From Podarcis erhardii (taxonomy: Eukaryota), in the NCBI GenBank assembly GCA_964252035.1, contig OZ176206.1: a stretch of 64,000 nucleotides of DNA; one strand, written 5' to 3'. Positions within the stretch are counted from its first letter, which is position 1, and each line of letters starts with the position of its first letter. This document shows, piece by piece, positions 10,282 to 58,000 of this stretch. The notes under the pieces are model-generated. The model was not told the origin of the DNA and did no database searches. It saw nothing but the letters and a program-made list of their open reading frames with translations. A program made the translations under genes and the position numbers.

Positions 10282-10317
<36 letters not shown>

Positions 10318-32265: not shown

Positions 32266-35200
32266 CTGCTCAGGTAGATTGTTGTTGAAAAAGAAGCAAA
32301 AGACACAAGTTATTTCTCTGTTTCCTTAGGGCACTAAGTAAGTCACTACAGGTCACTAAATGACTAGCAAACAGGCATTTAATTGAAAGGAAGGAGAGGA
32401 TACCCAGAACAAAGATTTACTTATCACTGAGAAATATATATTTTGTTCATAGAAGACCGACTGAAATTAATGGACATGACTAACTTAGGTAATTAATTTC
32501 AATCGGTCTCCTCTGAATAAATAGACCAAGGAAGGCAACCATTTCAGCACAGAGGGAAGCTTTTGTAGGCTCATAGCTACTGTAAAATGTTTCTTACGAT
32601 TATTTATTTTTAATATATTTGTTATATACTGCCCTTAATCAAGTTGAAAATACAAGATAAAAATGCAAATAACGAGTCACCAATCTGCACATTTGTCTGT
32701 TTTCCATTCTAGGCTTGTGGTAGAAAACTCAGCCATGTAAGATATCAGAAGGCTAAATGGATTCTTGAATACCACTCCTTTCCCCAACCGCGCCTCCCTT
32801 GCCCCCAGGGGGTAAGATTTGCATTTCATGCTCAGTGCCATTTTTCCTGCCTTCCAGCCCTGTTTGGGGGGTGGGAAACGAGGCACTATTCTGAGGGGGA
32901 AGCATTTTGGGTCCCCACATGAAATGCAGCACTAGGGGGGTGGGAATGGGGTTAACAACTTTATGCAGGCGCTCAACCTGCTGCTTCTCTCCATTTCCAC
33001 TTGGAGAACCATAGTACTGCTATTACTCAGACCGCACTAATGTCACTAGGACCACAAGCAAAGATTACACACAAATGCAACAGAAGCTACTGGGTATCAT
33101 CTAGTTAAATAATATTAATAATAGTAATAATGCCCCTTTCATTGTAAACCAAAATATTGCTCATTTAAAAGTATCAGCAATACTCACAACTACACCAGTA
33201 ACACCCTGAAATATAGAAGTGTGTATATAGTTAGTCTTTCCTCAGCAGCTCAAGCATTCATCACTGAGGTGTATAAGGGAGAGGACCTCAACATCCAATA
33301 GGCAGCATTGTCCCGTATTTCCATGTGCTGCATTGCATGTCAAGGCCCTGAGCCTTCCCCCATTTGTTGAATAATAAAACACATGGACACCAGTATTTTA
33401 GGTTAATGGGCTAATAAAGGCCACAACTTAATTGGTCACAGAATGTGAGTGGTATTGGCTTAGGCACTGGAATTGAACCGACTATATCTGACTCCTGCCC
33501 GCCATGCAGCTAGTCCAGTAAGGGTCAACCACCAGTAGGGGGAGCCCTGTGGATGTTCTGAGGCAGGAACCAAGATGGAGAACAACCAGGCCGTGCGGCT
33601 GCATAAATGCTATAAGCCACGCCCTCGGCCGACTGGATTGGTCAGTGGGGGTGTGACGCGGCTGGGACTCCCCCATGATGTGGGGGCACTGCCACACCCC
33701 CGCTGAACACGGTGGGAAGAAGAAGAAGAGTTTGGATTTGATATCCCGCTTTATCACTACCCTAAGGAGTCTCAAAGCGGCTCACAATCTCCTTTCCCTT
33801 CCTCCCCCACAACAAACACTCTGTGAGGTGAGTGGGGCTGAGAGACTTCAGAGAAGTGTGACTGGCCCAAGGTCACCCAGCAGCTGCTTGTGGAGGAGCG
33901 GAGACGCGAACCCGGTTCCCCAGATTACAAGTCCATCGCTCTTAACCACACTGGCTCTCTCCCCACACAGGGAAGGGAGTGGCCTACTAAGATCCCAAGA
34001 GACACCTGAAACTCTGCGGGAAACTGTGAGTAACCTTGTTGCTTAAGTACCAAACTCTTCAAGATAGTATTTCTGGAAATGTGGACCAAATCTAATATAT
34101 ACCATGATCTAACACTACTATGAAGAAAAGAGATAATTCAGCTGCAAAGGGTTCCTTCTATAGTAGGCTGCTTAGAACAGAAGAATCGATTATTTGTCAT
34201 ATTCTTTTTTGGCTAGGATCATATTCTGAGGCAGAAAAGAACTTCCACCTTGCCTCCCTACTACCTTCCCACTACGGACTATATAAAAAATACAGAAAAG
34301 TTCCAGAATACTCACGCTCAGTAAGTTGTTCAAATCAAGACCCTAAATTGAAAAACAAATTGAACTTATTATGCTTTCAGGTGCCCTACATTACGGATGA
34401 CTGCCTATGAAAATAGATAACTATCACCAGACAGTCTTCAATTAAAATGTGTTCTCTTAGAGGGGATGCCTGGTCCAAGTCCAGTTCAACAATATGGAAT
34501 CAAGTCCAGGTTCATATTACATGCTGCTTGTTTGTTTCATATGCTTCCTTTCCTTCACGGATTCTTCCTTTTATTACAGCTGTTAGCAATACTAAGGGAC
34601 CTTTTCCAGGAAGGATATGTGAGATATGAACATTTTAATACAACTCAAATTACATGGGCTTCAAGAGACAGAGCACTAGGAGAATTCAGATACTCCAATT
34701 ATTCATGTGGCATTCACACCCCAATGTTCCCAAAAGCTTTACACCAACAGGAAACCCAAGACTTGTCATATGAAGTGACAATATACAGTACAGTAGATCT
34801 GCAATTGACATGGGCGTCATGTTTCGGGGGTTTACGTACAAAGGCAAAACCATGCAAAGTGAGGAAGGCCCCATGGAACCATTCGCTCAAGGCCTGCTAC
34901 TACCTTGCCAGACTCTGGGAAGGTTGTGCGAGGTCTCTGGAAGGCTGTGGGAGGCTCCTGAGAGATATGAAGGGATGTCAATCCAAGTCCAGTTACATAT
35001 TACACTATCTTGGAGACACCTACAATAAGACATCCCAGCTTTTATTTCCTTCATGTCAGCAATGAATGTAGGGAAGCAGCAAATGATAATCAAATGCTCT
35101 TCACAAATGCCTACCTTTAAAAAAGGGCAATCATATTAACTCTGTCTGTTCTTCCCTGGCTTGGATCATATTTTGAAAAAGAGAAGAACTAAATGGAAAT

Positions 35201-38200
35201 AACAAGTTGAACTTCCTATGTTTTTGTGCTAAATTTTATAATTCTCTCCTTGGGTATCAAAAGTTGGCTGCCTGTAACAAATGGCAAACATTATAGCCCA
35301 ATGAGTTCTTCCCTTGCTGGGATCATCCTCTGACCACCTCCTTCCTTCCCTTCCTGCTTTCCATTTTCACACTACATACAATATAATAATCATTCAAAGG
35401 TTTCACAATACTCACGCTCAATAGACCTTGCAAACCCTACAGTGAAAAACAAATAAAACTTGTTAGGCTTTCATGTTGTTTGCGCCCCTTATAATCTGCA
35501 ACACTTGACAGAGCACAGTTGTTTATTCTGAAGAACCATCAGTACACAGTCCACTATGTAAAAGTGTCCTTTGAGAGAATATGTGGCCAAAGTCCAGTTT
35601 AAGGATACAGGGCACAGCAGATTATATCTAAAATATAATCGTTCAAAATTCCTGCCTTTGGAAAGGCAATGCATTTTAGCTGTGTGAATTCTTCCCTGGC
35701 TGAGGTTATATTGTGACAGAGAGTAACTTTTCCTTTCTTCCTCATCTCCACTTTCCCACTAAAAAGAAAACAAAAAAATCTCAATACTCACTGCCAAGGC
35801 TCCATTCGCATCAGCACGCTAAATTGAAAAGCAGATTGAACTGATTAGCAAATGGTATGGGAGATCCAGTCACAGATATGACACGTAACACATAGTTGGG
35901 TCAATACATATCAAGTACTAACAAGAATTCTTTCAAAGCGTTAATTCTATCAGGCAACAGCAAGCTATAACTCAGCATTGGAACACATTTTTAAAAGAAA
36001 AGCCTGACTAGCTTTTCAGATATCTTTTAAATAAAAAACTTTTTAAAGAAATTCCTGAAGTAAGTGCTATTATAGTTTGAGGTCTTGTTTATTCTGTTAT
36101 ATTTTACTCCAAGAAGGCCCATTTATCCTAAATAGAACCCCATAAGGTGGAGATGTATGTAATGTGATCCCATTGAGATCCCAAGATGAAAGTTTGCAAG
36201 CAGCTCTTAGAAATATTAAATAAATACATTTTTGGAAATTTATATATATATATTATAATAATTTTTTATTACTTTTTAAAATTGAAACTCTAAAGTAAGT
36301 ACATCATATAACATATAATATTAAAAACCATGGCGTTCTGAAGAGATTGGTGTTTTTAGTTTTGATATATCTGAATTCTGGGTTGAGCTTTTAAGGTGTT
36401 TGTGTAGTCTGGCAAGGCCAAAAAATAATAGTGGAGTTGGAGCATACAAGGGAAATCTGAAAATATTTTCATGATATTGCTTGGAAGTTCAGCTATTCTG
36501 GTGCCAGCCAACTCCTGCTTGCAGAGGTTTCCTAAAAAGCCTCTCTTAAAAGCCCAGATTCTTCTTTTCAAGATAAAACTATTTTCTGAACAAAAGAGAA
36601 ATCAGCTGCCCAAAACAAAGATATATAGACGGAGCCTAGGCTGCAGGGATTTAGAAAGGCAATTTTAGACCCTGGATGGGCCTAGAATTGCATTTTGCAG
36701 GGGGAGGTTCAAACAAAACAGACCATATAGGTAGTACACAAAGACTTCAAAATACTCACTTCCAGTGTCGAATGCACCTCAGGATCCTAAATTGAAAAGC
36801 AAATGGAATTACTTGGGCTTTTATGTACTCTTAACACTATGTCAGATGCCCACCTATACAGAGGGAAATCATCTACTTCGAAGGGTTGTCAGCTATTTAA
36901 AAGTGCTCTCTATATGAAGGGTGATTAATCAAAGTCCAGATACATATGAAACACTGCTTGGGGAGATCTACAATGAGACACCCCAGCTTTCATTTCCTTA
37001 ATGGTAGCAATGAATGTAGGGGGGCAGCAAATGCTTTGACAAATGCCTAGCTTTAAGAAAGGGCAATCATATTAGCTCTGTTTGTTCTTCCCTGACTCGG
37101 ATTCTATTTTTTGGGGGGGGGCTACTCTTTTCTTCCCCGCCTTCATCCCACTTTCCCATTATGGACTACGTAGACAAAACAATGGTTCACAATTCAAACA
37201 TTCACTTTCTCAACAGCACCCTAAATGAAAATAAATGGAAAGTTCTCACTACAAACCATAGAACAACCATAGAAATGTTTCACAATACTCACTTTCAACA
37301 ATTGATCTACAACCTACAGAGAAAAGCAAATTGAACATATTAGGCTTTCATGTTCTTTGCACGACATATATTTTGCAATACTTGACACAGGACAATTGTT
37401 TATTCTGAAGAACCATCAGCACACAGTCCACTGTGTAAAAGTGTCCTCTGTTTGAGAGAATGTTTAGCCAAAAGTCCAGGATTTTAGCTCATTTCCTTCC
37501 CTGAATCATTCCATACATTCTGGAAAAGAGGGGTGGCAAATAATATTAGTTGCCAGCCAAATGGCAAATATTATCGTCTAATGAGTTCTTCCATGGTTTG
37601 GGGCATCCACTGAGTCACAGAAGAGTTCCTCCTTCCTTCTCTCTATTCCTCCCATTTTAATGCAACAAACCGTATCGTAAACACACTAAGCTTTCGCAAT
37701 ACTCACTTGCAGTTTTTCTGGCAGACGAAGGCTCTAAATAGAAAAGCAAATTGAATTTATTAGATATTAGTGTCTGGCCAAAGTTCAGTATACAGAAATG
37801 TAAAAAATGAGACGTGCAGGGGGCAGCAGATTATATCTGAATGCCTAAAAGAATTCATTGCTTTAGGAAAGGGCAAGCATTTTAGCTCTGTGAATTCTTC
37901 CCAGCATGAGGTTATATATTGTAACAGAGAATAACTTTTCCTCTCCCCACCCCGAACTCCCTTCCACTTTCCCACTACAAATCATATAGGAAACCCGCTC
38001 AAGAATCACAATACATTCATGGATGCATTCACATCAAGACCCTAAACTCAAAAGCAAATCGAACTGATTAGCAAATGGTGGGAGATCCAGTCCCAGGTTT
38101 GCCACCTAACACATAGTTTCATCCTCAAGCAAGAATTTTACCGTTTCATGTGGCAAAGAACAAAATATAAAGGCAAACAAACGAAAACTGATTCAGTCTC

Positions 38201-41200
38201 ATGTGTTGCACAGCTGCCTTCATTTTAGCCAATCTCCTTTCGTGAATAATTCCGTATCTTCCCAAAAGGAGGGTCCCTCTCTAACAGTCAGGCTGATATA
38301 TTTGGTGTGGAATTCAGTCTCCTATTCATTAAGGTTAGAAGAGTAGACTGTCCAACTTGAAAAGACAAAGTAATAGTGGAGATGGGGCATACATGGGAAA
38401 TGTGGAAATAATTTTATGAACTTGCTTGAAAGTTCTGCTATACTAGTTGCCAGCCTGCTCCTGCTTGCAAACATTTCCTAAAAGCCTTTATATTAAAAAA
38501 ACAAAAACCCAAGATTCTTATTTCCAGTAGAACAATTTTCTGAATAGAAGATGATGCAAGGAGATCCACTGCCTAAGACAAAGATATAGAGACTGAGCCC
38601 AGGCTGTGAGAGTGTAGAACTAAGGCAATTTTAGACCCTGGATGGGTTTGGCAAATAATATTAGTTGCCAGCCAAATGGCAAACATTATCACCTAATGAG
38701 TTCTTCCATGCCTTGGATCATCAGAAGAGTTCCTTTCTTCCCTTTCTTTCTCCCATTTTATTACTACAAACCATATAGCAATCACACAAAGGTTTCACAA
38801 TACTCACTTGCAACGTCTTTTGCAAATCAAGGTTCTAAATAGAAAAGGAAATTGAATTTATTAGACATTCATGTCTGGCCAAGGTCCAGGATTTAAGGAA
38901 ACAGAAGTGTAAAAAAGGAGACCTGCAAGGGGCAGCAGATTATATCTGAATGTTTAAAATTTAATTCCTGGCTTTGGAGATGGCAAGCATTTTAGCTCTG
39001 TGAATTTTCCCCTGGCTGAAATTATATATTGTGACAGAGAATAACTTTTCCTTTCCTCCTTTCCCCCATCTCCTTTCCACTTTCCTGCTATAAATCATAT
39101 AGGAAACCCACTCAAGAATCACAATACATTCATGGCTGCATTCACATCAAGACCCTAAACTGAAAAGCAAATCGAACTGATTAGCAAATGGTATGGTGGG
39201 AGATCCAGTCCCAGGTTTGCCACCTAACACAGAGTTTCATCCTCAAGCAGGAATTCTACCATTTCTTGTGGCAGAGATCAGAATATAAAGGCAAACCAAT
39301 GGAAGCTGATTCAGTCTCACGTGTTGTGCAGTTGCCTTCATTTTTGCCAATTTCCTTTCTTGAATTCTTCCATACCTTCTCGAAAGGAGGCTCCCTCTCT
39401 AACAGCCAGGCTGATATATTTGGTATGGAGTTCACTCTCCTACTCATTAAAGTTAGAAGAGCAGATAAAGGAGAGCAGACTGTCCAACTTGCAAATTCAA
39501 AGTAACAGTGGAAATATTTGTATGACCTTTCTTGGAAATTCCGCCTTCCTTCCCTCCTTTCCTCTCATAATACTACTACAGACCATATAGTAATCACACA
39601 AAGGTTTCACAATACTCATGTTCAACGTTTCTCCCAAACCAATTTTCTAAATAAAAAAGCAAATTGAATTTATTAGACAAGTTAATTGGACAGCTTATAA
39701 TTTGTGCTATTTTACAGAGGACATTTGGCTTTTCTGAGGAGCCATGAGTACACAGAACTCTATGTAAAGGTATCCTGGCCAAAGTCCTGTTTAAGGATAC
39801 AGAAATTGGAGAAGGGAGGCTTGCAGGGGCCTCCTGTTTTGTTTCTCTTTCTAGTTCTTGCCCATATTGAGGATCATATCATAGCATGAAAGGATGCTAT
39901 ATGAATATTTGATATTTCAAAGCCTACAGTGGAAAATGGCATGGTGGGAGATATAGACACTGAAATGGCACATAGCACATAGTTTCATTCTCAGGCAGGG
40001 ATTCCCTCTTTTCCTGAAGGAAAGATCAGAATAAATAAGCAAACGGATCTAAAGACAGTCTCACATGTCTTCATTTTAGCCAATCTCCTTTCCTGGGTAA
40101 TTCCATACCCTCCTGAAAGGAAGGTCCCTCTCAAGTAACCAGGCTGATAGATTTGGTGTGGACTTCACTCTCCTTTTCCATTAAGGTTAGAAAAGCAGAT
40201 GAAGGAGAGTTGAGTGTCCAACGGGCAAAGACAAAGTATTAGTGGAGATGGGGCATAACATGGAAAATTTGAAAGTGCTTTCATGAAACTGCCTGGAGGT
40301 TCAGCTATACTAGTTACCAGCTAGGTCCTGCTTACAGACCTTTCCTTTAAAAAACACCTTTATTAAAAACCCACAATGCTTATTTCCAGTACAACAATTT
40401 TCTGAAGAGAAGAGGATGCCTTTGCCCTAGGCGATCAGCTGCCCCCAAAAGGATATGAAATTAGAGCCCAGGATGTGGGGGTTCAATAAAACAATTTAAA
40501 TTCCTGGGTGGACCTAAAATTTAATTTATTAGCTAGTCCTTACTCAACAGCTAAATCATTCATCACTGAAGTGCCTGAAATAGGAGACTTCAGCATTCAA
40601 AAGGCAGAATTTTACCATATTTTCATAAACTGCGTAATAAGATCCAAAGAGATACCAGAACCTCTAACAAAAATGTGATCAAGCTTGTTGCTTTTGCACC
40701 AAACTTTTCAATATATTCTTTCTGGAAATATAGACTGAATCTAACACACACAAGGATCGAACAGTACTATGAAGAGAAGAGAGAACTCAACCAAACAAAG
40801 GTTCCTTCTGTAGCAAACTGATTAGAACTGGAGAACAGATTGTCATATACTTGCCAGGCTGGGATCATACTTTGAGGCAGAAAAGTACTCGCTCCCTCCC
40901 TCCCTCCCAGTTTCCCACTCCAGAGCATACAATAAATAAACAAAAGTTCCACAATACTCACATCCACTAAACCAGACACACCAAGACTCTAAATTGAACA
41001 ACAAAATGAACTGATTAGCAAATGGCATCGTGGGAGAACAGATTGTTCGTCATTTTCTTCGCTGGCAGTGATATCATATTTTGAGGCAGAAAAGCCCTCC
41101 CTCCCAGTTTCCCACTCCAGATCATACAATAAGTACAAAAAGTGCCATAATACTCATGTCCACTACATCAGACAAACCAAGATTCTAAATTGAACAACAA

Positions 41201-44200
41201 ATTGAAATGATTAGCAAACTGCATGATGGGAGCTCCAGCCACAAGTATATCACGTAACACAGTTTTATCTTCAGGCAGGGATTCTCCCACTTCATGGGGG
41301 AAAATGAGAATTTACAGGCAAACTAGGGTTAGAAGAGCGGATAAAGAAGAGCAGACCGTCCAACGTGCAAAGACAAAGTAATAGTGGAAAATGTGTAAAA
41401 CAACAACAACAAAAAGTAACTTATGTAAAATTTGAAAATATTTTCATGGAATTGCTTGGACATTCTGCTAGACTGGTTGCCAGCCAGTAGGATAAGATAA
41501 GTTATTGATGAGGCTAAAATTCCTTGGTTTGGAATTCAAACTTCCTTGAGTAATAATGACTGGCTTTCACAAATGGAAAACATTATAGCGTAGTGAATTT
41601 CCCCCCCAGTGGGATCATCCTATGAGCAACAGAAGACCTTCTCCCTCCCACTACAAATCTTAGGGTATGAAGATTTCTCAATACTCACGCTAGTTGCTCC
41701 ACCCAGAAGCTAAATTGAAAAGGAAATTCAACTTGTTAGTCTGCCATGTTCTCTTAACTGCTTAACATGTGGAAATGTCATGTAACACATATTTAGGTCC
41801 TAAGGCAAGGATTCCCCTATTCATCAAGGAAACATCAGAAGAGAAAGCAGAAGCGATCTGAACTGATTCAGTCTCATGTGCATCACAACTGCCTCCATAT
41901 TAGTCATTTTTCTTTACAGAGCAATTCCATAACAAAGGAGAGGAATCCAACCAAATTGCAAAGAGAAGGAAATAGTGGAGGTGGGGCATAATGCGGAAAA
42001 TCTGAAAACTCTTTTTAGAAAAATCATTGGGTAAACTATTTGCCAGCCAGATCCTGCTCCCATATGTTTCCTAAGAAACCTTCTGGATTTCAAATTATTG
42101 TAAATAATCTGTAATGTAACGCACTTTTTGTATGTTACTTTAACTAATAAACGCATATTTTTACCCTGCCCCATGCATTTTTGTACACACTGCTTGCCTG
42201 GAGAGCACCACTGCAACATTCAGTGAATGTTGAATTCAGAAGCGCTGATATGTTCCAGTTAGTACAGCATTTTGTTTCAGAAAGTGAGAAGTAGGCAAGT
42301 GGGGTTTAAAATGATAGCTGAATCTAATTTCTCCCTCATCTCTACATCAGACTGGATTTTTTCTTCCCCTTGGCTTTCTTCATCATTTCCTGAAGTTCCC
42401 CTCCCCAATATTTGGGGCTAATAGATTCAGTGAAATGTCTATCATCATTTGCCAAAAGGCTTAGGACAGAAGGTAAAGGAGAGGATATCAGACAGACCAA
42501 CCCACAGGGACAAAAATACAGCAGAGGGACATAACATCAAAAAGGTCTCTTTTAGGAAATAACTAGATGTTTTCCAGCCTACATCAAAGATATATTTTTT
42601 TTAATTGTGATTTCAGTTGCAGTATAAAAATTTCCCAAAGAGAAGGACAGGACCCCCCGCCCCACAAAAAACACCTCCCCAAAGAACAGTATAATGAAGG
42701 AGCCCAGAATAAATTCTACCCATGCCTGGGCTATTTGATTTAGTTTCAGATTCCCAGAAGACATGAACCAGAATCAATCAGGATACGACCACATGACTAA
42801 ATGTTAAAAAATAAATAATTCTTTTTTTAAATTGAAAAGTCACAATAAATACTGGATACTTACTGGAGATCTCTTCTTCCTCTGTTGTTGTTTTACAAAG
42901 GGAAACAATAGTGTTTTTTTAGTTTTTTGCTTTTTTGCTTTTCATATATTTTATCATCAAATATATTAAAAGAAAATACAGAAAAGATCAAATTGTTATT
43001 TATTTCTGTTATTTATTTATTTATGTTATTACCCCATTTCTGAGTATATTACAGGAGAAACACATTATACTTGTTTCTGTTCACATCTCTGTATTAGAAG
43101 TGACTCTCAACATACATGAGGGTTATGTTCCAGGGACAACGCATAAAGCCAAAATTTTGTATAATCAAAATACATTCTCCCTGCACCTCCAAACACTCTC
43201 CTAAGGTAGGGTTAACAAAGTTTCTCCCCTCAAACGTCCGCCCCCTTATTTATTTATGTTTAGCCAAGTGAGTAAAGCTGAACGTGCATAAGTTACGTTG
43301 TGAGTTACCAGTATGAGAAAGAAACTTGTGTTGCTATTGATGTGCACTTTGACCCCCGTGTACATTAACATGCAACTGAAGTCCTCAATTCCCACTAGAA
43401 ATCCAGATTTCTCCCTCTCCTGGCTGTTCTGCAAGCTGCAGTTTCTGGAGGCAGCACTACCTGCTCACATTATGCTGAAAACTGTCTCATTGCTATCCGT
43501 AATATATGCATGGTTATCAATCTATCAAAAATATGTATCAAATAGCATATTTTTTTACTTTTACCAATAGGCAGCATTTCCTCATATTTCCATATGCTAC
43601 ATATTAAGATCCAAAGAGACACCTGAAACTCTGAGGGAAACTGAGTAACTCTGTTGCTTTAGTACCAAACTCGTCAAGATCTAATACACACCATGAATCC
43701 AACACTACTACAGAAAGAAGAGATAATTTAGCTGCAAAGGCTTCCTTCTATAGTAGGCTGCTTAGAACAGAAGAATCGATTGCTTGTCATATTCTTCTCT
43801 GGCTGGGATCTCATATTCTGAGCGAGAGAAGAACTTCCTCCTTGCCTCCCTCCCACCTTCCCAATATAGACTATACAATAAATACACAAAAGTTCCACAA
43901 TACTCACGCCTAGTACTTTGGACAAATCAAGACCCTAAATTGAAAAACAAATTGAACTTATTAGGCTTTCAGGTACCCTACATTACAGATGAGTCTTTGA
44001 AAGTAGATAACTGAAAACAGTCAGTCTTCAATAAAAATGTGTTCTCTTTTGAGGGGATGCCTGGTCCAAGTCCAGATCTTTCCCAAAAATCCTTGTGTAT
44101 TTTCCCTTCCAGGACAATAGTATTTTGACACAAATTAAAAGAGGATGCCATGGAAATCAGTTTCCCAAAGCAAAAGGAAAGGAACAGAATCCAATCTGTG

Positions 44201-45973
44201 GTCACACAGTAAGACAATTTGAGACCCTGGACTGACTGGCCTTATGGGGGCACTGGGTCAGGAAGACATCTGAATCTCAGGAGGAAACTCACTTTGATCT
44301 TCAGAAAAGGCCTGGCTCTGGTTTGCATCACTAACTGTGTTATTGGTGGTGAGTGTGAAAGGAAGGGCCTTTTGGGTGGTTATGCCCACATTTCAGGAAG
44401 AGATAAGTTACTATGTCTTCCACGTTTCTCATTGCTGCTGTAGTTTTGGGGTTTTGTTTCATATGTTTCCTTTGCTTCACAGATTCTTGCTTTTAATATG
44501 GCTGTTAGCAATACTAAGGGACCTTTTCCAGGAAGGATATGTGAGATATGAACATTTTAATACAACTCAAATTACGTGGGCTTCAAGAGACAGAGCACTA
44601 GGAGAATTCAGATACTCCAATTATTCATGTGGCATTCACACCCCAATGTTCCCAAAAGCTTTACACCAACTGGAAACCCAAGACTTGTCATATGAAGTGA
44701 CAATATACAGTACAGTAGATCTGCATGCCCCATGGGCGTCATGTTTCGGGGGTTTACGTACAAAGGCAAAACCATGCAAAGTGAGGAGAAATATGAAGGG
44801 ATGTCAATCCAAGTCCAGTTACATATTACACTATCTTAGAGACACCTACAATAAGACATCCCAGCTTTTATTTACTTCATGTCAGCAATGAATGTAGGGA
44901 AGCAGCAAATGATAATCAAATGCTCTTCACAAATGCCTACCTTTTAAAAAGGGCAATCATATTAACTCTCTCTGTTCTTCCCTGGCTTGGATCATATTTT
45001 GAAAAAGAGAAGAACTAAATGGAAATAACAAGTTGAACTTCCTATGTTTTTGTGCTAAATTTTATAATTCTCTGCTTGGGTATCAAAAGTTGGCTGCCTG
45101 TAACAAATGGCAAACATTATAGCCCAATGAGTTCTTCCCTTGCTGGGATCATCCTCTGACCACCTCCTTCCTTCCCTTCCTGCTTTCCATTTTCACACTA
45201 CATACAATATAATAATCATTCAAAGGTTTCACAATACTCACGCTCAATAGACCTTGCAAACCCTACAGTGAAAAACAAATAAAACTTGTTAGGCTTTCAT
45301 GTTGTTTGCGCCCCTTATAATCTGCAACACTTGACAGAGCACAGTTGTTTATTCTGAAGAACCATCAGTACACAGTCCACTATGTAAAAGTGTCCTTTGA
45401 GAGAATATGTGGCCAAAGTCCAGTTTAAGGATACAGGGCACAGCAGATTATATCTAAAATATAATCGTTCAAAATTCCTGCCTTTGGAAAGGCAAGGCAT
45501 TTTAGCTCTGTGAATTCTTCCCTGGCTGAGGTTATATTGTGGCAGAGAGTAACTTTTCCTTTCTTCCTCATGTCCACTTTCCCACTAAAAAGAAAACAAA
45601 AAAATCTCAATACTCACTGCCAAGGCTCCATTCGCATCAGCACGCTAAATTGAAAAGCAGATTGAACTGATTAGCAAATGGTATGGGAGATCCGGTCACA
45701 GATATGACACGTAACACATAGTTGGGTCAATACATATCAAGTACTAACAAGAATTCTTTCAAAGCGTTAATTCTATCAGGCAACAGCAAGCTATAACTCA
45801 GCATTGGAACACATTTTTAAAAGAAAAGCCTGACTAGCTTTTCAGATATCTTTTAAATAAAAAACTTTTTAAAGAAATTCCTGAAGTAAGTGCTATCTTT
45901 ATTCTGTTATATTTTACTCCAAGAAGGCCCATTTATCCTAAATAGAACCCCATAAGGTGGAGATGTATGTACA

Positions 45974-46012
<39 letters not shown>

Positions 46013-49000
46013 CCCATTGAGATCCCAAGAAGAAAGTTTGCAAGCAGCTCTTAGAAATATTAAATAAATACATTTTTGGACATTTATATATATATAATAT
46101 AATAATTTTTAATTACTTTTTAAAATTTTAGAATTTGTAAATTAAATTGAAACTCTAAAGTAAGTACATCATATAACATATAATATTAAAAACCATGGCG
46201 TTCTGAAGAGATTGGTGTTTTTAGTTTTTATCTGAATTCTGGGTTGAGCTTTTCAGGTGTTTGTGTAGTCTGGCAAGGCCAAAAAATAATAGTGGAGTTG
46301 GAGCATACAAGGAAAATCTGAAAATATTTTCATGATATTGTTTGGAAGTTCAGCTATTCTGTTGAGAGCCAACTCCTGCTTGCAGAGCTTTCCTAAAAAG
46401 CCTCTCTTAAAAGCCCAGATTCTTCTTTTCAAGATAAAACTATTTTCTGAACAAAAGAGAAATCAGCTGCCCAAAACAAAGATATATAGATGGAGCCTAG
46501 GCTGCAGGGATTTATAAAGGCAATTTTAGAACCTGGATGGGCCTAGAATTGCATTTTGCAGGGGGAGGTTCAAACAAAACAGACCATATAGGTAATACAC
46601 AAAGACTTCAAAATACTCACTTCCAGTGTCGAATGCACCTGAGGATCCTAAATTGAAAAGCAAATGGAATTACTTGGGCTTTTATGTACTCATAACACTA
46701 TGTCAGGTAACACCTATACATAGGAAAATCATCTACTTTGAAGGGTTGTCAGCTATTTAAAAGTGCTCTCTATATGAAGGGAGATTAATCAAAGTCCAGA
46801 TACATATGAAACACTGCTTGGGGAGATCTACAATGAGACGCCCCAGCTTTCATTTTCTTAATGGTAGCAATGAATGTAGGGGGGCAGCAAATGCTTTGAC
46901 AAATGCCTAGCTTTAAGAAAGGGCAATCATATTAGCTCTGTTTGTTCTTCCCTGACTTGGATTCTATTTGGGGGGGGGGACCTACTCTTTTCTTCCCCGC
47001 CTTCCTCCCACTTTCCCATTATGGACTACGTAGACAAAACAATGGTTCACAATTCAAACATTCACTTTCTCAACAGCACCCTAAATGGAAATAAATGGAA
47101 AGTTCTCACTACAAACCATAGAATAACCATAGAAAGCTTTCACAATACTCACATTCACCATTTGATTCAAAACCTACAGTGAAAAGCAAATTGAACATAT
47201 TAGGCTTTCATGTTCTTTGCACGACATATATTTTGCAATACTTGAGAGAGGACAATTGCTTATTCTGAAGAACCATCAGCACACAGTCCACTGTGTAAAA
47301 GTGTCCTCTGTTTGAGAGAATGTTTAGCCAAAAGTCCAGGAATTTAGCCCATTTCCTTCCTTGAATCATTCCATACCTTCTGGAAAAGAGGGGTGGCAAC
47401 TAATATTAGTTGCCAGCCAAATGGCAAACATTATCGCCTAATGAGTTCTTCCATGATTTGGGTCATCCACTGAGTCACAGAAGAGTTCCTCCTTCCTTCT
47501 CTCTCTTCCTCCCATTTTACTGCAACAAACTGTATCGTAAACACAATAAGCTTTCGCAATACTCACTTGCAGTTTCTCTGGCAGAGCAAGGCTCTAAATA
47601 GAAAAGCAAATTCAATTTATTAGATATTAGTGAGCCAACAGTAGATATTAGTGAGCCAACATGAGCCAACAGTGTGACACGGCAGCTAAAAAAGCCAATG
47701 CAATTCTGGGCTGCATCAATAGGAGTATAGCATCTAGATCAAGGGAAGTAATAGTGCCACTGTATTCTGCTCTGGTCAGACCTCACCTGGAGTACTGTGT
47801 CCAGTTCTGGGCACCACAGTTCAAGAAGGACACTGACAAACTGGAACGTGTCCAGAGGAGGGCAACCAAAATGGTCAAAGGCCTGGAAACGATGCCTTAT
47901 GAGGAACGGCTAAAGGAGCTGGGCATGTTTAGCCTGGAGAAGAGGAGGTTAAGGGGTGATATGATAGCCATGTTCAAATATATAAAAGGATGTCACATAG
48001 AGGAGGGAGAAAGGTTGTTTTCTGCTGCTCCAGAGAAGCGGACACTGAGCAATGGTTCCAAACTACAAGAAAAAAGATTCCACCTAAACATTAGGAAGAA
48101 CTTCCTGACAGTGAGAGCTGTTTGACAGTGGAATTTGCTGCCAAGGAGTGTGGTGGAGTCTCCTTTTTTGGAGGTCTTTAAGCAGAGGCTTGACGACCAT
48201 ATGTCAGGAGTACTCTGATGGCGTTTCCTGCTTGGCAGGGGGTTGGACTCGATGGCCCTTGTGGTCTCTTCCAACTCTATGATTCTATGATTCTATGATT
48301 CTAGTGTCTGGCCAAAGTTCAGTATTTAAGAATACAGAAATGTAAAAAATGAAACCTGCAGGGGGCAGCAGATTATATCTGAATGCCTAAAAGAATTCAT
48401 TGCTTTAGGAAAGGGCAGGCATTTTAGCTCTGTGAATTCTTCCCAGCATGAGGTTATATATTGTAACAGAGAATAACTATTCCTCTCCCCACCTCCCAAC
48501 TCCCTTCCACTTTCCCACTACAAATCATATATTAAACCCACTCAAGAATCACAATACATTCATGGCTGCATTCACATCAAGATCCTAAACTGAAAAGCAA
48601 ATCGAACTCATTAGCCAACGGAAACTGATTCAGTCTCATGTGTTGCACAGCTGCCTTCATTTTAGCCAATTTCCTTTTGTGAAATTTTCTTTATCTTCCC
48701 AAAAGGAGGGTCCCTCTCTAACAGTCAGGCTGATATATTTGGCGTGGAATTCAGTCTCCTATTCATTAAGGTTAGAAGAGCAGATAAAGAAGAGTAGACT
48801 GTCCAACTTGAAAAGACAAAGTCATAGTGGAGATGGGGCATACATGGAAAATGTGGAAATAATTTTATGAACTTGCTTCGAAGTTCTGCTATACTAGTTG
48901 CCAGCCTCCTCCTGCTTGCAGACATTTCCTAAAAGCCTTTATATTAAAAAAAACAAAAACCCAAGATTCTTATTTCCAGTAGAACAATTTTCTGAATAGA

Positions 49001-52000
49001 AGATGATGCAAGGAGATCCACTGCCTAAGACAAAGATATAGAGACTGAGCCCAGGCTGCGAGAGTGCAGAACTAAGGCAGTTTTAGACCCTGGATGGGTC
49101 TGGCAAACAATATTAGTTGCCAGCCAAATGGCAAGCCTTACAGCCTAACGAGTTCTTCCAAGAAGTGTGCATGCACACGAAAGCTCATACCTAGAACAAC
49201 TTAGTTGGTCTTTAAGGTGCTACTGGAAGGAATTTTTTTTATTTTGTTTTGACTATGGCAGACCAACACGGCTACCTATCTGTAACAAGTTCTTGCATGC
49301 CTTGGATCATCCTCTGAGTCACAGAAGAGTTCCTCCTTCCTTCCCTTTCTTTCTCCCATTTTACTACTACAAACCATATAGCAATCACACAAAGGTTTCA
49401 CAATACTCACTTGCAATGTCTTTTGCAAATCAAGGTTCTAAATAGAAAAGGAAATTGAATTTATTAGACATTCATGTCTGGCCAAGGTCCAGGATTTAAT
49501 GAAACAGAAGTGTAAAAAAGAGACCTACAAGGGGCAGCAGATTATATCTAAATGCCTAAAAAAATTAATTCCTGGCTTTGGAAATGGCAAGCATTTTAGC
49601 TCTGTGAATTCTTCCCTAGATGAAGTTATATATTGTGACAGAGAATAACTTTTCCTTTCCTCCCCATCTCCTTTCCACTTTCCTGCTATAAATCATATAG
49701 GAAATCCACTCAAGAATCACAACACATTCATGGCTGCATTCACATCAAGACCCTAAACTGAAAAGCAAATCGAACTGATTAGCAAATGGTATGGTGGGAG
49801 ATCCAGTCCCAGGTTTGCCACCTAACACAGAGTTTCATCCTCAAGCAGGAATTCTACCATTTCTTGTGGCAGAGATCAGAATATAAAGGCAAACCAACGG
49901 AAGCTGATTCAGTCTCACGTGTTGTGCAGTTGCCTTCATTTTTGCCAATTTCCTTTCTTGAATTCTTCCATACCTTCTCGAAAGGAGGCTCCCTCTCTAA
50001 CAGCCAGGCTGATATATTTGGTATGGAGTTCACTCTCCTACTCATTAAAGTTAGAAGAGCAGATAAAGGAGAGCAGACTGTCCAACTTGCAAAGTCAAAG
50101 TAACAGTGGAAATATTTGTATGACCTTTCTTGGAAATTCCGCCTTCCTTCCCTCCCTTCCTCTCATATTACTACTAGGGACCATACAGTAATCACACAAA
50201 GGTTTCACAATACTCACGTTCACCGTTTCTCCAAGTTTCTAAATAAAAAAGCAAATTGAATTTATTAGACAAGTTAATTGGACAGCTTATAATTTGTGCT
50301 ATTTTACAGAGGACATTTGGCTTTTCTGAGGAGCCACGAGTACACAGAACTCTATGTAAAGGTATCCTGGCCAAAGTCCTGTTTAAGGATACAGAAATTG
50401 GAGAAGGGAGGCTTGCAGGGGCCTCCTGTTTTGTTTCTCTTTCTAGTTCTTGCCCATATTGAGGATCATATCATAGCATGAAAGGATGCTATATGAATAT
50501 TTGATATTTCAAAGCCTACAGTGGAAAATGGCATGGTGGGAGATATAGACACTGAAATGGCGCATAGCACATAGTTTCATCCTCAGGCAGGGATTCCCTC
50601 TTTTCCTGAAGGAAAGATCAGAATAAATAAGCAAACGGATCTAAAGACAGTCTCACATGTCTTCATTTTAGCCAATCTCCTTTCCTGGGTAATTCCATAC
50701 CTTCCTGAAAGGAAGGTCCCTCTCAAGTAACCAGGCTGATAGATTTGGTGTGGACTTCACTCTCCTTTTCCATTAAGGCTAGAAAAGCAGATGAAGGAAA
50801 GTTGAGTGTCCAATGGGCAAAGACAAAGTATTAGTGGAGATGGGGCATAACATGGAAAATTTGAAAGTGCTTTCATGAAACTGCCTGGAGGTTCAGCTAT
50901 ACTAGTTACCAGCTAGGTCCTGCTTACAGACCTTTCCTTTAAAAAACACCTTTATTAAAAACCCACAATGCTTATTTCCAGTACAACAATTTTTGGAAGA
51001 GAAGAGGATGCCTTTGCCCTAGGCAGTCAGCTGCCCCCAAAAGGATATGAAATTAGAGCCCAGGATGTGGGGGTTCAATAAAGCAATTTAAATTCCTGGG
51101 TGGGCCTAAAATTAAATTTATTAGCTAGTCTTTACTCAACAGCTCAATCATTCATCACTGAAGTGCCTGAAATAGGAGACTTCAGCATTCAAAAGGCAGA
51201 ATTTTACCATATTTTCATAAACTGCCTAACAAGATCCAAAGAGATACCAGAACCTCTAAGAAAAATGTGATCAAGCTTGTTGCTTTTGCACCAAACTTTT
51301 CAATATATTCTTTCTGGAAATATAGACTGAATCTAACACACACAAGGATCGAACAGTACTATGAAGAGAAGAGAGAACTCAACCAAACAAAGGTTCCTTC
51401 TGTAGCAAACTGATTAGAACTGGAGAACAGATTGTCATATACTTGCCTGGCTGGGATCATACTTTTCTGGGAGGCAGAAAAGTACTCGCTCCCTCCCTCC
51501 CTCCCAGTTTCCCACTCCAGAGCATACAATAAATAAACAAAAGTTCCACAATACTCACATCCACTAAACCAGACACACCAAGACTCTAAATTGAACAACA
51601 AAATGAACTGATTAGCAAATGGCATCGTGGGAGAACAGATTGTTCGTCATTTTCTTCCCTGGGAGTGGTATCATATTTTGAGGCAGAAAAGCCCTCCCTC
51701 CCAGTTTCCCACTCCAGATCATACAATAAGTACAAAAAGTGCCATAATACTCATGTCCACTACATCAGACAAACCAAGATTCTAAATTGAACAACAAATT
51801 GAACTGATTAGCAAACTGCATGATGGGAGCTCCAGCCACAAGTATATAACGTAACACAGTTTTATCTTCAGGCAGGGATTCTCCCACTTCATGGGGGAAA
51901 ATGAGAATTTACAGGCAAACTAGGGTTAGAAGAGCAGATAAAGAAGAGCAGACCATCCAACGTGCAAAGACAAAGTAATGATGAGGCTAAGTTTTATAAT

Positions 52001-55000
52001 TCCTTGGTTTGGAATTCAAACTTCCTTGAGTAATAATGACTGGCTTTCACAAATGGAAAACATTATAGCGTAGTGAATTTCCCCCCCAGTGGGATCATCC
52101 TATGAGCAACAGAAGACCTTCTCCCTCCCACTACAAATCTTAGGGTATGAAGATTTCTCAATACTCACGCTAGTTGCTCCACCCAGAAGCTAAATTGAAA
52201 AGGAAATTCAACTTGTTAGTCTGTCATGTTCTCTTAACTGCTTAACATGTGGAAATGTCATGTAACACATATTTAGGTCCTAAGGCAAGGATTCCCCTAT
52301 TCATCAAGGAAACATAAGAAGAGAAAGCAGAAGCGATCTGAACTGATTCAGTCTCATGTGCATCACAGCTGGAAATAGTGGAGGTGGGGCATAAAGCAGA
52401 AAATCTGAAAACCATTTTTAGAAAAATCATTCGGGTTTTCATTTGGGTATACTATTTGCTAGCCAGATCCTGCTCCCATATGTTTCCTAAGAAACCTTCT
52501 GGATTTTCACTTCCACTACAACAATGTTCTGAACAGAAGGAAAAGTGGATGCCAAGAAGATCAGCTCCCCCAAGCAAATACAGAGAGAAAGAGTTCAGGC
52601 CCTGTACTGAGTGGTCTTATTTGGGGTGGAGCACACAGGAAGACACATGAATATCCATCACCAACTGTGGTGTGCTTGGTGAGCATGGGTGATAGGGTCT
52701 TCTTGGTGGCTGTGCTCAGGTTATGGAACTCAGCCATGGAAGAGTTCCATCTCTTGGGCATCAGCTAAACACAACAAAATTTAAGTGTACATTTCGCTAC
52801 TAGATAAGTGATATTTCTCCCATGTCTGTCATTGCTGGCAGTTTGCATGGGTGTTGCTTCGTATGCTTTCTTGGTTTCAATGACTACTCTCCTTACATTA
52901 CTTCTTAGCCATCCTGAGGCACCTATTTTAGGATGGATCCCAAGTGCTTCAGTTAGATGTGGTTCACAGTTGCCATCAGACAGGGGATGGCCAAATAGGT
53001 CCCTTCTGGTTTCTCTCAGATCCTCATTTTCCCAAAGGAGAGGATACCAGACAAACCAACTCACAGGGACAAAAGGATAGCAGAGGGACATAACGTTTGA
53101 AAAGTCTCATTCAGGAAATAACTAGAATTTTTTTCTAGCCTCCATTCAAAATATTGATTTTCATTTCCAGTATAAAAAAATCCCAAAGAGAAGGACAGGC
53201 TCCCAATGCCCCTTAATCCCCCCCCCCCAATAACAGTATAATGACTGAGCCCAGAATAAATTCTATTGATTCAGGGGCTTTTTGTGTTAGTTTCAGATTT
53301 CCAGAATCAATCAGGAAACTACAACACAACTAAATGTTAATAAATAAATAAATAAAAATTTCAATTGAAAAGTCACAATAAATACTGGATACTTACTGGA
53401 GATCTCTTCTTCCTCTGTTGTTAGTTTACAAAGGGAAACAATAGTGGTTTTTTTAGTTTTTTGCTTTTTTGTTTTTCATATATTTTGTCATCAAATATAT
53501 TCCAAGAAAATACAGAAAAGATCAAATTGTTATTTATTTCTATTCACATCCCGTTACTAAGTATATTACAGGAGAAACACATTATATTTGCTTCTGTTTC
53601 TGCTCAATCTCTATATCACAGTGGTACCTCTGGTTAAGAACTTAATTTGTTCTGGAGGTCCGTTCTTAACCTGAAACTGTTTTTAACCTGAAGCACCACT
53701 TTATCTAATGGGGCCTCCCGCTGCCGCTGCACAATTTCTGTTCTCATCCTGAAGCAAAGTTCTTAACCCGAGGTACGATTTCTGGGTTAGCGCAGTCTGT
53801 AAACTGAAGCGTCTGTAAACTGAAGCGTCTGTAACCCGAGGTACCACTGTACATTCAACTGTCAACATAACATGAGGGTAATGTTCTAGGGACAACTCAT
53901 AAAGCTAAAATCGTGTATAATCAAAACACATTCTCCCTGCACCTCCAAACACTCTCCCAAGGTGGGGTTGCCAAAGTCCCCCCCCCCCAAAAAAAACCCC
54001 TCCACTCCTTATTTATTTACTTTTTGCCAAGTGAGTAAAGCTGAATGGTGCCGCATTCCTAGATGGCAGAGGCTTCACTGGGGGAAGGAACTCAACCTTC
54101 AGAGCTTTTCCTGCTGGACCGTGGGGCCATAAGCCCCCATGGCCTATCAGGAACCAAATCCTAGCCTGCACCCTGCTTTGGCAACTGCAGTTCCTGGAGG
54201 TAGCAGTATCTGCTAACATTATACTGAAAAAGTCTCATTTTTATCCATAATACAGACAGTTATCAATCTATCAAAAATATGTATCAAATAGCATATCACT
54301 TCAATCATTTGTCTCTGAAACACCAAGATTAAGAGCAAGGAAGCGGTCCCTGTTTTTTGGGGGGGGGGGTTAGCTTTTCAAATCTCCCTAAAGTTAATGG
54401 ATGTCGAAGAAAAGTAATACAATACTTACAGAAAGTCCAGGCAGGCCCTAAAATAGAAAACAGTGTGTTTTGTGAAAACATCATTTGAGACAAAATAAGC
54501 AAATCTGGGCATGCTTCCCAACACTACTATACAGATCTCCAGATTTAAGGGAAACAAAGTTCCTGAGAGCACATATGAATAGTTGAGCACAGTTAAATCA
54601 CAACAGCCACTTCTGTGGGACACTGTTATGAACTAAGGGATACTTCTCGACTTCATGATCACAATTAATATACCACATTTTTTCGTCTATAAGACACCGC
54701 CTATCTTGGGGGCCTCAAAATTTAGAAAATAGGTGGAGACTGAGCTTTTGGGAAGGATTATTTGGGGGGGGGATGCCAAAAATTGTTCACCCAACAGAAT
54801 GCAGCACACAACCCCTTGCATTGCTTACAATCTCCGCTTACAATCTCGGGCTCGCGCCAAAAAACATTCGCCCGTCCCCCCTTGGCACTACCCATGTATA
54901 AGACAACCCTAAATTTTGAACCTCATTTTTGGGTCAAAAAAGTTTGTCTTATACATGGAAAAATATGGTATAACATGTTTGATTACTAAAAGCAGTTGCA

Positions 55001-58000
55001 AAGATTAGGGCCCTGAACCAAATTTTCATACTTCTAAAAGGAAGAGCCAAGCTGTGGTGTTTTTCTATTCTTGTTAAAAAGGAAAAAGAAACTTTTTGGA
55101 TATCGCTAAGGCTAAATAAGACTAAAGGTAAGTAATGTCTAATACTCACAGGCACTGGCAGGCTATTCTAAAATAGAAAGCAAGAATCCATTTTAACATA
55201 ATCAATATAACATAATCAGTGTAATTAATAAATAAACACACACAAAAACACACATCCCCCTTCTTTTAGTAAAAGTACCTAGTGGCCATACAGTGTTATC
55301 AAAAAATATACAAAATAAAATAAAATGCACAATGAAAACATAAAACCAGTTTCTAAATATGCAGCATAAGGGCTCAGTTCCTCAGAGGTTAATGTAAATG
55401 GGAACAGTAGGCAATCACTCTGCAAAGCAAGGTGTTTCCTCAGTAGATATTCACAGTATCCTCATCGGACTGTAATCAGGCCAGCATAGTTCAGGCAGAA
55501 CCCTGCTATGAACAAAGGGATACTTCTCGACTGCATGATCACAATTAATATACCACATTTTTCTGTCTATAAGACGCCCCTATTTTGGGGGCCTCAATAT
55601 ATAGAATATAGGGGGAGATTGAGCTTTTGGGAAGGATTATTTGGGGGGGATGCCAAAAATTGTTCACCCGACAGAATGCAGCACACAACCCCTTGCATTG
55701 CTTACAATCTCCGCTTACAATCTCGGGCTCACGCCAAAAGACATTCGCCCGTCCCCCCTTGGCACTACCCATGTATAAGACAACCCTAAATTTTGAACCT
55801 CATTTTTGGGTCAAAAAAGTTTGTCTTATACATGGAAAAATATGGTATAACATGTTTGATTACTAAAAGCAGTTGCAAAGATTAGGGCCCTGAACCAAAT
55901 TTTCATACTTCTAAAAGGAAGAGCCAAGCTGTGGTGTTTTTCTATTCTCGTTAAAAGGGAAAAAGAAACTTTTTGGATATCGCTAAGGCTAAATAAGACT
56001 AAAGGTAAGTAATGTCTAATACTCACAACCACTGGCAGGCCATTCTAAAATAGAAAGCAAGAATCCATTTTAACATAATCAATATAACATAATCAGTATA
56101 AGTAATAAATAAACACACACAAAAACACACATCCCCCTTCTTTTAGTAAAAGTACCTAGTGTGGCATACAGTGTTATCATAAAAATATAAAAAATATAAT
56201 AAAATGCACAATGAAAACATAAAACCAGTTTCTAAATATGCAGCATAAGGGCTCAGTTCCTCAGAGGTTAATGTAAATGGGAACAGTAGGCAATCACTCT
56301 GCAAAGCAAGGTGTTTCCTCAGTAGATAATCACAGTATCCTAATTGAACTGTAATCAGGCCAGCATAGTTCAGGCAGAACCCTGCATAGGAGTGCTTGCA
56401 TAGTTCTTTCAGGCAATAGCCACATACCCTCCAACATTTCTTCAATGAAAATAAGGATGTCTCATTCCATAATGATCATTTTACTATTTATACCCCACAC
56501 ATTGTACTGGGTGGCCCAGCCATTCTGGGTGGCTTCCAACATATATTAAAAACATGAAACATAAAGAAAAAATCCCTCTACAGGATTGCCTTCAGACGGC
56601 ACAGGGGTCGGATGTCTCCACACCCTCCAACAATGATACAATGAATGTAGGGATGTCCTAAAGAAAAGTGGGACATTCCGGGATAAAATCAGAAACCCGT
56701 ATGGCTTCTCTAAATCAGGGACGTCCCTGGAAAATCGTTACACTTGGGGGGGGTCTGTAGCCATAACATAGAAAATACAGTACTGGATCACATCTACACC
56801 ATATATTTAAAAGACATTCAAGTGCTTTTAAAGCACAGGTCTTAATGAGCTTCTAAAGCACATGGATAATCATTGCCCAAAGGTTAGTAATATAGAGAAC
56901 TTATAAGTACTTCAGCTGGGAGGTTCTAAAACACAAAACAGCAAGTTATGTGAAAACATCATTTGGGACATAAAGAAGCAAAACTGGGCAAACCTCCCAA
57001 CACTAATATATCTATGGCTCTCCAGAATGAAGGGGAACATAGCTCCTGAGAGCATTTGTAAGCCCAGTCACCTTTTTATATATTGGACATCATCAGAAGT
57101 CACAAAAGCTTCTTTAAGTCTGTCTTTGATATCATGTACAGAAATGGTAACCTATGAGGTATATGGGGAAGTGTGCTATTTAAGACTAAAGGAATGTATT
57201 TAGAATTAGGGTTGCCATATCTTAAAGAGCAAAAAAAAGAGGACAGTCCAAGCCGGGGAAAGAGGTGCAGGTGTGGGGGGCGGCGACCACTGTGCCACTA
57301 CACCTCTTTCTGATCTCCCTAAAGTTAATGAATGTCCAAGAAAAGTAATTCAATACAATTACAGAAAGTCCAGGCACGCCCTAAAATAGAAACCAGTGTG
57401 TTTTGTGAAAACATTGTTTTGTAAAAACAGGTTGTGCACAACATATGAATAGTTGTGCACAATTAAAGCTTAAAGGTTTAGCCACTTTTCTCTTTCCATC
57501 GGCATGAATTTACTATTTAACTCATCAACATAATAAGACACCGCTGGGGAACACTTCAATGAAATGAGCTGCAAAATCTTGCAGTAAAGACAAGCCCCCC
57601 TGCCCCAACAAAGGATTAAGGCTTTACATAGAGGATTTCTAGTACTTACACCTCCAAGAAGGTTCTAAAAAGATAAAGAAAGCAATTATTCCATCATGTT
57701 TTCTGAACACAAGAATGATAAATATAGCAAACATTTTGATTATTTCTCACTGGTAAAGGTGGACCCCCACAGTGTGTATCTGAAGAAGTGTGCATGCACA
57801 CGAAAGCTCATACCAAGAACTGACTTAGTTGGTCTTTAAGGTGCTACTGGAAGGAATTTGTTTTGTTTTGACTATGGCAGACCAACACGGCTACCTATCT
57901 GTAACCCCACAGGAAGGTCACTGTTGTTTCTCTCTCCTACAGTTCACCCATATCCTCTCAGTCTGCTTTCCATGCTTCAGGTCATGGATTTCTTCAGAAG

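Follow-up and report, generated by a model that had tools for sequence, protein, structure and literature searches.

A predicted furin-processed micro-exon gene and its tandem paralogues in Podarcis erhardii

Gene A, its micro-exons, and the RKKRSP cassettes

A stretch of 64,000 nucleotides (nt) from Podarcis erhardii contig OZ176206.1 was analyzed computationally; it is referred to below as the window, and all coordinates are relative to it. Three tandem paralogues (A, B, and C) forming a local family were located on the same (minus) strand, with B and C downstream of gene A. Gene A, which runs from beyond position 64000 to 31590, would be a previously unrecognised and unannotated gene with a predicted secreted product, and the reading of the locus that is favoured here, with modest confidence, is that its product is an orphan, fast-evolving polyprotein that is secreted and cleaved by furin-like convertases.

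Within the window, gene A comprises a terminal coding exon of 123 nt (31715-31593), followed by the stop codon, and at least 34 micro-exons, all symmetric and in phase 0, that are 15-30 nt long. The layout consists of 12 N-terminal micro-exons, a first RKKRSP cassette followed by 10 micro-exons (unit 1), a second cassette followed by 10 micro-exons (unit 2), and the terminal exon:

63597-63580, 62625-62608, 62046-62029, 60744-60730, 60460-60443, 59122-59105 (-): N-terminal micro-exons 1-6, from the splice-site scan
58399-58370, 57664-57650, 57380-57363, 56044-56027, 55167-55150, 54447-54430 (-): N-terminal micro-exons 7-12, from the splice-site scan
53397-53414 (-): RKKRSP cassette exon 1, 18 nt, between ag and gtaagt
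52169-52189 (-): unit 1 micro-exon, 21 nt
51559-51585 (-): unit 1 micro-exon, 27 nt
50218-50238 (-): unit 1 micro-exon, 21 nt; the splice donor of its counterpart in unit 2 has been lost
49411-49437 (-): unit 1 micro-exon, 27 nt
47567-47593 (-): unit 1 micro-exon, 27 nt
47153-47173 (-): unit 1 micro-exon, 21 nt; 6 of 21 bases differ from the unit 2 counterpart
46621-46647 (-): unit 1 micro-exon, 27 nt
45618-45644 (-): unit 1 micro-exon, 27 nt
45242-45262 (-): unit 1 micro-exon, 21 nt
43908-43934 (-): last micro-exon of unit 1, 27 nt; its final Gly stands directly before cassette 2
42864-42881 (-): RKKRSP cassette exon 2, 18 nt, identical to cassette 1
41689-41709 (-): unit 2 micro-exon, 21 nt
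40962-40988 (-): unit 2 micro-exon, 27 nt
38808-38834 (-): unit 2 micro-exon, 27 nt
37707-37733 (-): unit 2 micro-exon, 27 nt
37293-37313 (-): unit 2 micro-exon, 21 nt
36760-36786 (-): unit 2 micro-exon, 27 nt
35792-35818 (-): unit 2 micro-exon, 27 nt
35416-35436 (-): unit 2 micro-exon, 21 nt
34316-34342 (-): unit 2 micro-exon, 27 nt
33188-33205 (-): last micro-exon before the terminal exon, 18 nt; flanks homologous to the paralogue B exon at 24019-24002
31590-31715 (-): terminal coding exon, 41 codons plus stop, one Cys
31475-31480 (-): AATAAA polyadenylation signal, about 110 nt past the stop, conserved in paralogue C

The length of all 34 micro-exons is divisible by 3, and when the exons were joined, frame 0 was open for 290 codons, with 17 and 23 stops in frames 1 and 2. 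The N-terminal region (54430-63597), with its 12 exons of 15-30 nt, encodes 74 amino acids (aa), of which 32% are Gly and 24% Leu. Across the regions of the 290-aa translation Leu ranged from 22 to 25% and Gly from 9 to 32%, and no S-x-E motif was present.

A degenerate back-translated RKKRSP pattern matched three times in the window, always on the minus strand (53414-53397, 42881-42864, and 9686-9670), against an expectation of 0.01. The first two matches are the gene A cassettes, which are identical 18-nt units with the flanks ...aacag and gtaagt, and the third is the 3' portion of a 24-nt GLRKKRSP exon belonging to paralogue C. A first-pass annotation of the same DNA had reported that an 18-nt RKKRSP exon occurs twice, and it does, with an AG acceptor and a GTAAGT donor in each case. 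Both cassettes lie inside a tandem duplication of about 10.5 kb, the copies of which are 95-99% identical over long stretches; as they share this single, recent duplication, the double occurrence counts as one event and not as two independent observations. A scan for stop-free units bounded by AG and GT, with lengths divisible by 3, recovered all exons used in the first-pass annotation, and the joined exons reproduced exactly its 84-aa peptide (8 D/E, 5 K/R) and its 83-aa sister (9 D/E, 5 K/R). RKKR matches the optimal furin motif, R-X-K/R-R (PMC11735993), as had been claimed, and the cassettes look like real phase-0 exons.

Paralogues B and C and the propeptide junction

The features of paralogues B and C that bear on gene A are as follows:

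26284-26349 (-): paralogue B signal-peptide exon, 22 codons from ATG, hydrophobic, with a CATAAATAG box about 70 nt upstream
25471-25494 (-): paralogue B exon 2, GLRSKRSP, 24 nt
16181-16243 (-): paralogue C signal-peptide exon, 21 codons
9669-9692 (-): paralogue C exon 2, GLRKKRSP, 24 nt
4622-4738 (-): paralogue C terminal exon, 38 codons plus stop; protein 76% identical to the gene A tail

The leader exon of paralogue C is 73% identical to that of B, and the two leaders end in ...RIA (C) and ...STA (B) directly before the junction exon; in each gene the next recognisable exon is the 24-nt GLRSKRSP or GLRKKRSP unit, with its motif two residues past the predicted end of the signal peptide. The promoter and 5' untranslated region (UTR) of the two paralogues are about 98% identical (26350-26480 and 16244-16375, -), CATAAATAG box included, and the coding part of the signal peptide differs by 8 bases and one 3-nt indel. 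The position of this TATA-like box, about 70 nt before the ATG, suggests that the ATG-bearing exon is the first of the gene; a possible alternative is given by a weak acceptor lying 20 nt ahead of the start codon. At the other end, homology between gene A and paralogue C covers the terminal exon and the 3' UTR (83-88% identity in DNA, 76% in protein).

When the four junction exons were aligned, AAGAGATCTCCnGTAAGTAT was invariant, and P2, P1, Ser, and Pro were unchanged. The P3 residue, for which the furin consensus makes no demand, was K or S, and the P4 Arg codon was CGA in B and C and AGG in gene A, a synonymous difference. A furin-type motif is therefore found at every junction: RKKR twice in gene A, RKKR in C, and RSKR in B. 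Since a signal-peptide exon followed by a GLR(K/S)KRSP exon occurs in both B and C, the boundary between RKKR and SP would be the propeptide junction of the gene A/B/C family, and the paralogues lend further support to the furin-cassette part of the first-pass annotation. BMP4 is cleaved mainly at RSKR followed by SP, which is exactly the sequence of paralogue B; the proteins are unrelated, and the processing logic alone is shared. The hexapeptides of proalbumin and pro-PTH, which are short N-terminal pro-pieces taken off by furin, resemble B and C in that a signal peptide is followed by about six residues ending in R-X-K/R-R (PMC11735993 for the motif).

The same exons bear on a most improbable alternative, namely that RKKR is a functional basic patch, binding for example glycosaminoglycan or mineral, and that the protein stays intact as a repetitive matrix or surface-active product resembling the SCPP/casein or PLUNC/latherin type. 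Genes for SCPPs and caseins form tandem clusters and encode fast-evolving secreted proteins, with phase-0 introns, many exons of 18-30 nt, and intragenic exon duplication. Gene A is similar to them in the phase 0 of all of its introns, its many tiny exons, and its place in a tandem cluster, and its Gly/Leu-rich composition recalls surface-active proteins of the PLUNC/latherin type. However, the motif of the paralogues occupies the classic position of a short pro-piece, and its substitutions track the furin consensus rather than charge alone (K to S at P3). Gene A also differs from SCPP/casein genes in lacking an SXE motif and a P/Q-rich or acidic composition, and the ATG exon of B and C seems to come straight after the TATA-like box, which would leave no non-coding exon 1. 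No match to the Pfam domain LBP_BPI_CETP (BPI-fold/PLUNC) was found in the 84-aa unit or the tail.

Further exon-like units were observed in both paralogues. In paralogue B, apparent Ala/Val/Pro/Thr-rich micro-exons are spread over 18327-24019 (24019-24002, 21280-21254, 20550-20533, 19655-19638, and 18353-18327, -), most of them with a ACTGTGCACTTTGACATTTCAG-type acceptor flank. Additional candidate micro-exons, in phase 0 and with GTGAGTATT donors, lie in the 6.5-kb first intron of paralogue C (9700-16180, -), among them 14298-14269, 12507-12481, and 10750-10718, so that the product of gene C may exceed the minimal 67-aa model. Two open reading frames (ORFs) lying over the junction exons of B and C (25594-25124 and 9953-9531) were rejected as chance, as both run through the splice donor and that of B is in another frame.

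Exon modules, divergence, and donor loss

The 21- and 27-nt exons of both units of gene A share a stereotyped context, in which a CTAAT branch-point-like motif is followed by ...TTCAATTTGCTTTTCAATTTAG immediately before the exon and GTGAGTATTGTG immediately after it. In this flank family, each of the 23 exon units is a multiple of 3 nt long and free of stops. In pairwise comparisons of 12 different units from one block, the 30 nt before the exon were 68-87% identical and the 20 nt after it 67-90%, whereas the exons themselves were about 45% identical. Likewise, the last micro-exon of gene A shares its flanks with its paralogue B counterpart but only 7 of 18 exon bases. The locus as a whole has a nested tandem-repeat structure, which together with the conserved flanks and divergent exons indicates that gene A grew as exon-plus-intron modules were duplicated in tandem; thereafter the splice signals were conserved and the coding portion diversified. 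A non-coding satellite with chance ORFs was considered and rejected on the grounds of the symmetric stop-free units, the conserved flanks, and the 290 open codons.

An interspersed repeat about 245 nt long, with copies that are 85-92% identical to one another, was noted at 18772-19022, 23211-23461 (inverted), and 53618-53851. The last of these interrupts unit 1 relative to unit 2 and was therefore inserted after the large duplication or lies outside it.

At least nine sister micro-exons are still open in frame, with lengths that are multiples of 3, and have a mutated donor, which reads ATGAGT, GTTTGA, GTGTTG, or GTATTG instead of GTGAGT. These include the following:

51755-51781 (-): decayed micro-exon, 27 nt, open frame, donor ATGAGT; twin at 41158-41184
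39620-39646 (-): decayed micro-exon, in unit 2 only, donor G to A at a CpG (exon-final C and donor G)
47060-47080 and 37200-37220, and exons starting at 49752, 48584, 39154, and 38041 (-): further sister exons with dead donors

In the ATGAGT donors, which belong to two kinds of exon, the lost G came after an exon-final C, i.e., in a CpG. As one donor is dead in unit 2 only, its loss is younger than the 10.5-kb duplication.

Between unit 1 and unit 2, exon sites differed at 6.1% and well-aligned intron at 3.0% (Fisher P 0.004). The differences were concentrated in two exons, and the cassette exon and several others were identical. By the Nei-Gojobori method, nonsynonymous divergence (dN) of the exons was 0.075 and synonymous divergence (dS) 0.070, which gives a dN/dS of about 1. 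Purifying constraint appears to be absent from the peptide bodies, in contrast to the splice signals and the cleavage motif, which are maintained. The divergence matches that of fast-evolving secreted defence or communication proteins and is also compatible with relaxed constraint; the pattern as a whole would fit a lineage-specific secretion product with a defence, surface-active, or signalling role.

The 41-aa terminal exon, the only contiguous coding piece of at least 30 aa, was compared by phmmer with 1.84 billion protein representatives and gave four hits, all of them spurious TPR/repeat proteins. Word-indexed protein searches with the 88-aa unit and the putative 67-aa gene C precursor returned no homologues among proteins of 0.55-1.75x the query length, a window that a longer annotated protein could escape; phmmer has no such limit. 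No Rfam family was found in the window, and the other long ORFs of the window matched no Pfam family, hence giving no clue to a transposable element.

The divergence and the donor losses would also be expected if the locus were decaying or silent, that is, a young duplicated relic that is no longer, or never was, expressed and whose open frame survives because its duplication is recent. For such a relic speak the dN/dS near 1 with exons diverging faster than introns, the sister exons with dead donors, the lack of any homologue or annotated protein in the large collections searched, and a paralogue B with no recognisable 3' exon. It is nevertheless decidedly unlikely. The older exon units, though only about 45% identical in the exon part, have all kept a length divisible by 3, an open frame, AG and GTGAGT splice sites, and the branch-point motif, and their flanks are far more conserved than neutral intron. 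Moreover, the 290 codons free of stops in frame 0 stand against the 17 and 23 stops of the other frames, and the furin motif has been maintained through synonymous change.

An expressed, furin-processed polyprotein remains the favoured reading, and several further observations weigh against it alongside the dN/dS of about 1 and the lost donors. The 5' end of gene A lies outside the window, and a third signal-peptide exon was not found in the 54-64 kb region. The n-region of the signal peptides of B and C contains no basic residues, and a terminal exon of paralogue B was looked for in the window and not found. The omega of 0.67 between the tails of gene A and paralogue C is a value that a decaying gene would show likewise. 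The lack of any homologue in the protein collections searched counts against it as well. Pro stands at P2', where it is tolerated by furin in BMP4.

A different reading accepts expression and places the diversity in splicing. The RKKRSP exons would then be alternative entry points or skippable modules, with one junction exon and one unit per mRNA, and isoforms would be made rather than a polyprotein. Schistosome micro-exon genes (MEGs) generate variants through exon skipping. Short symmetric exons are a feature of these genes as well (10.1101/2023.06.21.545858). Any subset of the gene A exons would be in frame, as all are symmetric, the junction exon directly follows the signal-peptide exon in B and C, and the near identity of the units makes mutually exclusive use conceivable. 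On the other hand, the donors of all live cassettes are strong and uniform (GTGAGT or GTAAGT) and their acceptors are conserved, weak or competing sites were not seen, and nothing in the sequence enforces exclusivity. Alternative splicing of this kind is thus considered unlikely.

Predicted products, related systems, and significance

On the polyprotein reading, the ancestral layout would have been a signal peptide, a hexapeptide pro-piece ending in R-X-K-R, and a product starting with Ser-Pro. Gene A would have been enlarged from this by repeated tandem duplication of exon-plus-intron modules, and in the latest step the duplication of the 10.5-kb block, with its junction exon, would have placed the cleavage motif twice in the interior of the gene. 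Furin-type convertases in the secretory pathway would be expected to cut after each RKKR and to release three pieces: a Gly/Leu-rich N-terminal part; an 84-aa Leu-rich peptide with a net charge of -3; and a 124-aa C-terminal part with a net charge of -6, consisting of the 83-aa sister and a 41-aa tail with one Cys. The final Gly of unit 1 stands directly before RKKR and is a candidate amidation donor once the basic residues have been trimmed by convertase and carboxypeptidase; as Gly makes up 12% of residues, its position could be chance. The predicted structure of the tail alone was of low confidence, with a predicted local distance difference test (pLDDT) score of 58 and one helix at residues 7-18.

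The first-pass annotation had proposed two anionic peptides of about 84 aa. Their mildly anionic character (-3 for the 84-aa peptide and -4 for the 83-aa sister, both with 24% Leu) and the length of the first were confirmed, but the second product would be 124 aa and not 83, as the frame runs past the last micro-exon into the terminal exon. A 9-nt unit, TAAAGAATT, preceded by cag and followed by gtaagt, was observed at 32265-32257 (-), between the last micro-exon and the terminal exon, with a strong polypyrimidine/AG acceptor. A copy is present in paralogue C near 7640-7660 (-), and the approximately 100 nt upstream are almost identical between the two genes, more so than the coding tail. The TAAAGAATT element is a candidate micro-exon carrying an in-frame stop, or else a conserved piece of intron. 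Speculatively, its inclusion would terminate translation ahead of the tail, and this would be the only route to an 83-aa C-terminal product.

It had further been proposed that the peptides are dermcidin-like amphipathic helices with an antimicrobial, lipid-binding, or chemosignal-carrier role in skin or femoral glands. Human dermcidin is encoded by a five-exon gene and yields one C-terminal peptide of about 47 aa. The gene A peptides resemble it in having a basic site followed by Ser and in being mildly anionic, Leu/Gly-containing released products, and they evolve fast, as defence and communication peptides typically do. However, the maximum helical hydrophobic moment over 18 residues was 0.385, which is no higher than in shuffled sequences (P 0.39; mean P 0.40), and in the hydrophobicity spectrum the power at 100 degrees was below the shuffle mean (P 0.93 and 0.90 for the 84- and 83-aa peptides). 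Each peptide contains 13 Gly/Pro residues. The spectrum instead peaked at 115 degrees, or one cycle every 3.13 residues (z scores of 6.1 and 8.5; for the maximum across all angles, P 0.025 and 0.002). This peak arises from the pattern x-L-x-L-x-x-x-L-x in the 9-residue exons and x-L-x-x-x-V/L-x in the 7-residue ones. A hydrophobic period of about 3.13 residues without one of 3.6 is unusual for a Leu-rich secreted peptide.

Dermcidin structures are present in the PDB, and a phmmer search of the PDB at E<=10 returned two unrelated chains and no dermcidin chain. A Pfam scan of the 84-aa unit and the tail at E<=10 gave nothing significant and one chance Calcipressin match. The amphipathic alpha-helix was not supported, the dermcidin parallel found no sequence link, and expression in skin or femoral pores has no basis in the sequence, as tissue is not readable from DNA. 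With the additional 41-aa tail of the second product also against it, the dermcidin-like role is regarded as very improbable, and the antimicrobial claim should not be carried forward without experiments; of the earlier proposal as a whole, the two amphipathic peptides were only partly right.

Among known systems, the pipid frog genes for skin peptides come closest to gene A in design; schistosome MEGs and vertebrate SCPP/casein genes are near to it too, and none of these shows a relation in sequence. The skin peptide genes of pipid frogs (magainin, caerulein, PGLa, and CPF; PMC3731216) likewise encode secreted precursors in tandem gene clusters, with peptide exons duplicated in tandem within the gene and RXXR-type convertase sites flanking the peptides, and in these precursors constraint falls on the signal peptide and the cleavage sites while the peptide bodies diverge (PMC3731216). 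Gene A differs from them in having no sequence similarity, in spreading each product of 84-124 aa over about ten micro-exons where the frog genes have one short peptide per exon, in its anionic peptides without an alpha-helical amphipathic period, and in its reptile host. Schistosome MEGs (10.1101/2023.06.21.545858; PMC4350168) resemble the present family in that most of their coding sequence is carried by symmetric exons of a few to a few dozen nt, divisible by 3, with a signal-peptide exon in front of them and a longer exon at the end, and in their secreted, rapidly evolving products. MEGs have been described only in platyhelminths, and the likeness is one of design without homology. The exon flanks of gene A, in contrast, show an origin by duplication of exon-intron modules. 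No MEG protein is known to be a furin-cut polyprotein. Literature searches on peptide strings and on vertebrate micro-exon genes found nothing relevant.

A broader proposal is offered tentatively and with more doubt than confidence: that the locus is a vertebrate counterpart of the schistosome MEGs, an orphan, lineage-specific reptile family in which the diversity of secreted proteins arises by the birth of cassette exons of 15-30 nt, hypervariation, and the death of donor sites, and of which one member has become a furin-processed polyprotein by internalising its propeptide-junction exon, its released pieces including a C-terminally amidated 83-residue peptide with an unusual hydrophobic period of about 3.1 residues.

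If gene A is expressed, it would be expected to escape standard annotation, given its exons of 15-30 nt, its introns of about 1 kb, and the lack of any match in the 1.84 billion protein representatives. The birth and death of exons are recorded at this one locus by conserved flanks, hypervariable bodies, and donor loss at CpG sites, and it offers a compact setting in which the recognition of micro-exons and the turnover of exons can be studied. If the reading given here is true, vertebrates too would be able to assemble secreted proteins from long series of symmetric micro-exons, and a polyprotein may originate through duplication of a propeptide-junction exon into the interior of a gene. The larger point would be the existence of a hidden orphan micro-exon gene family.

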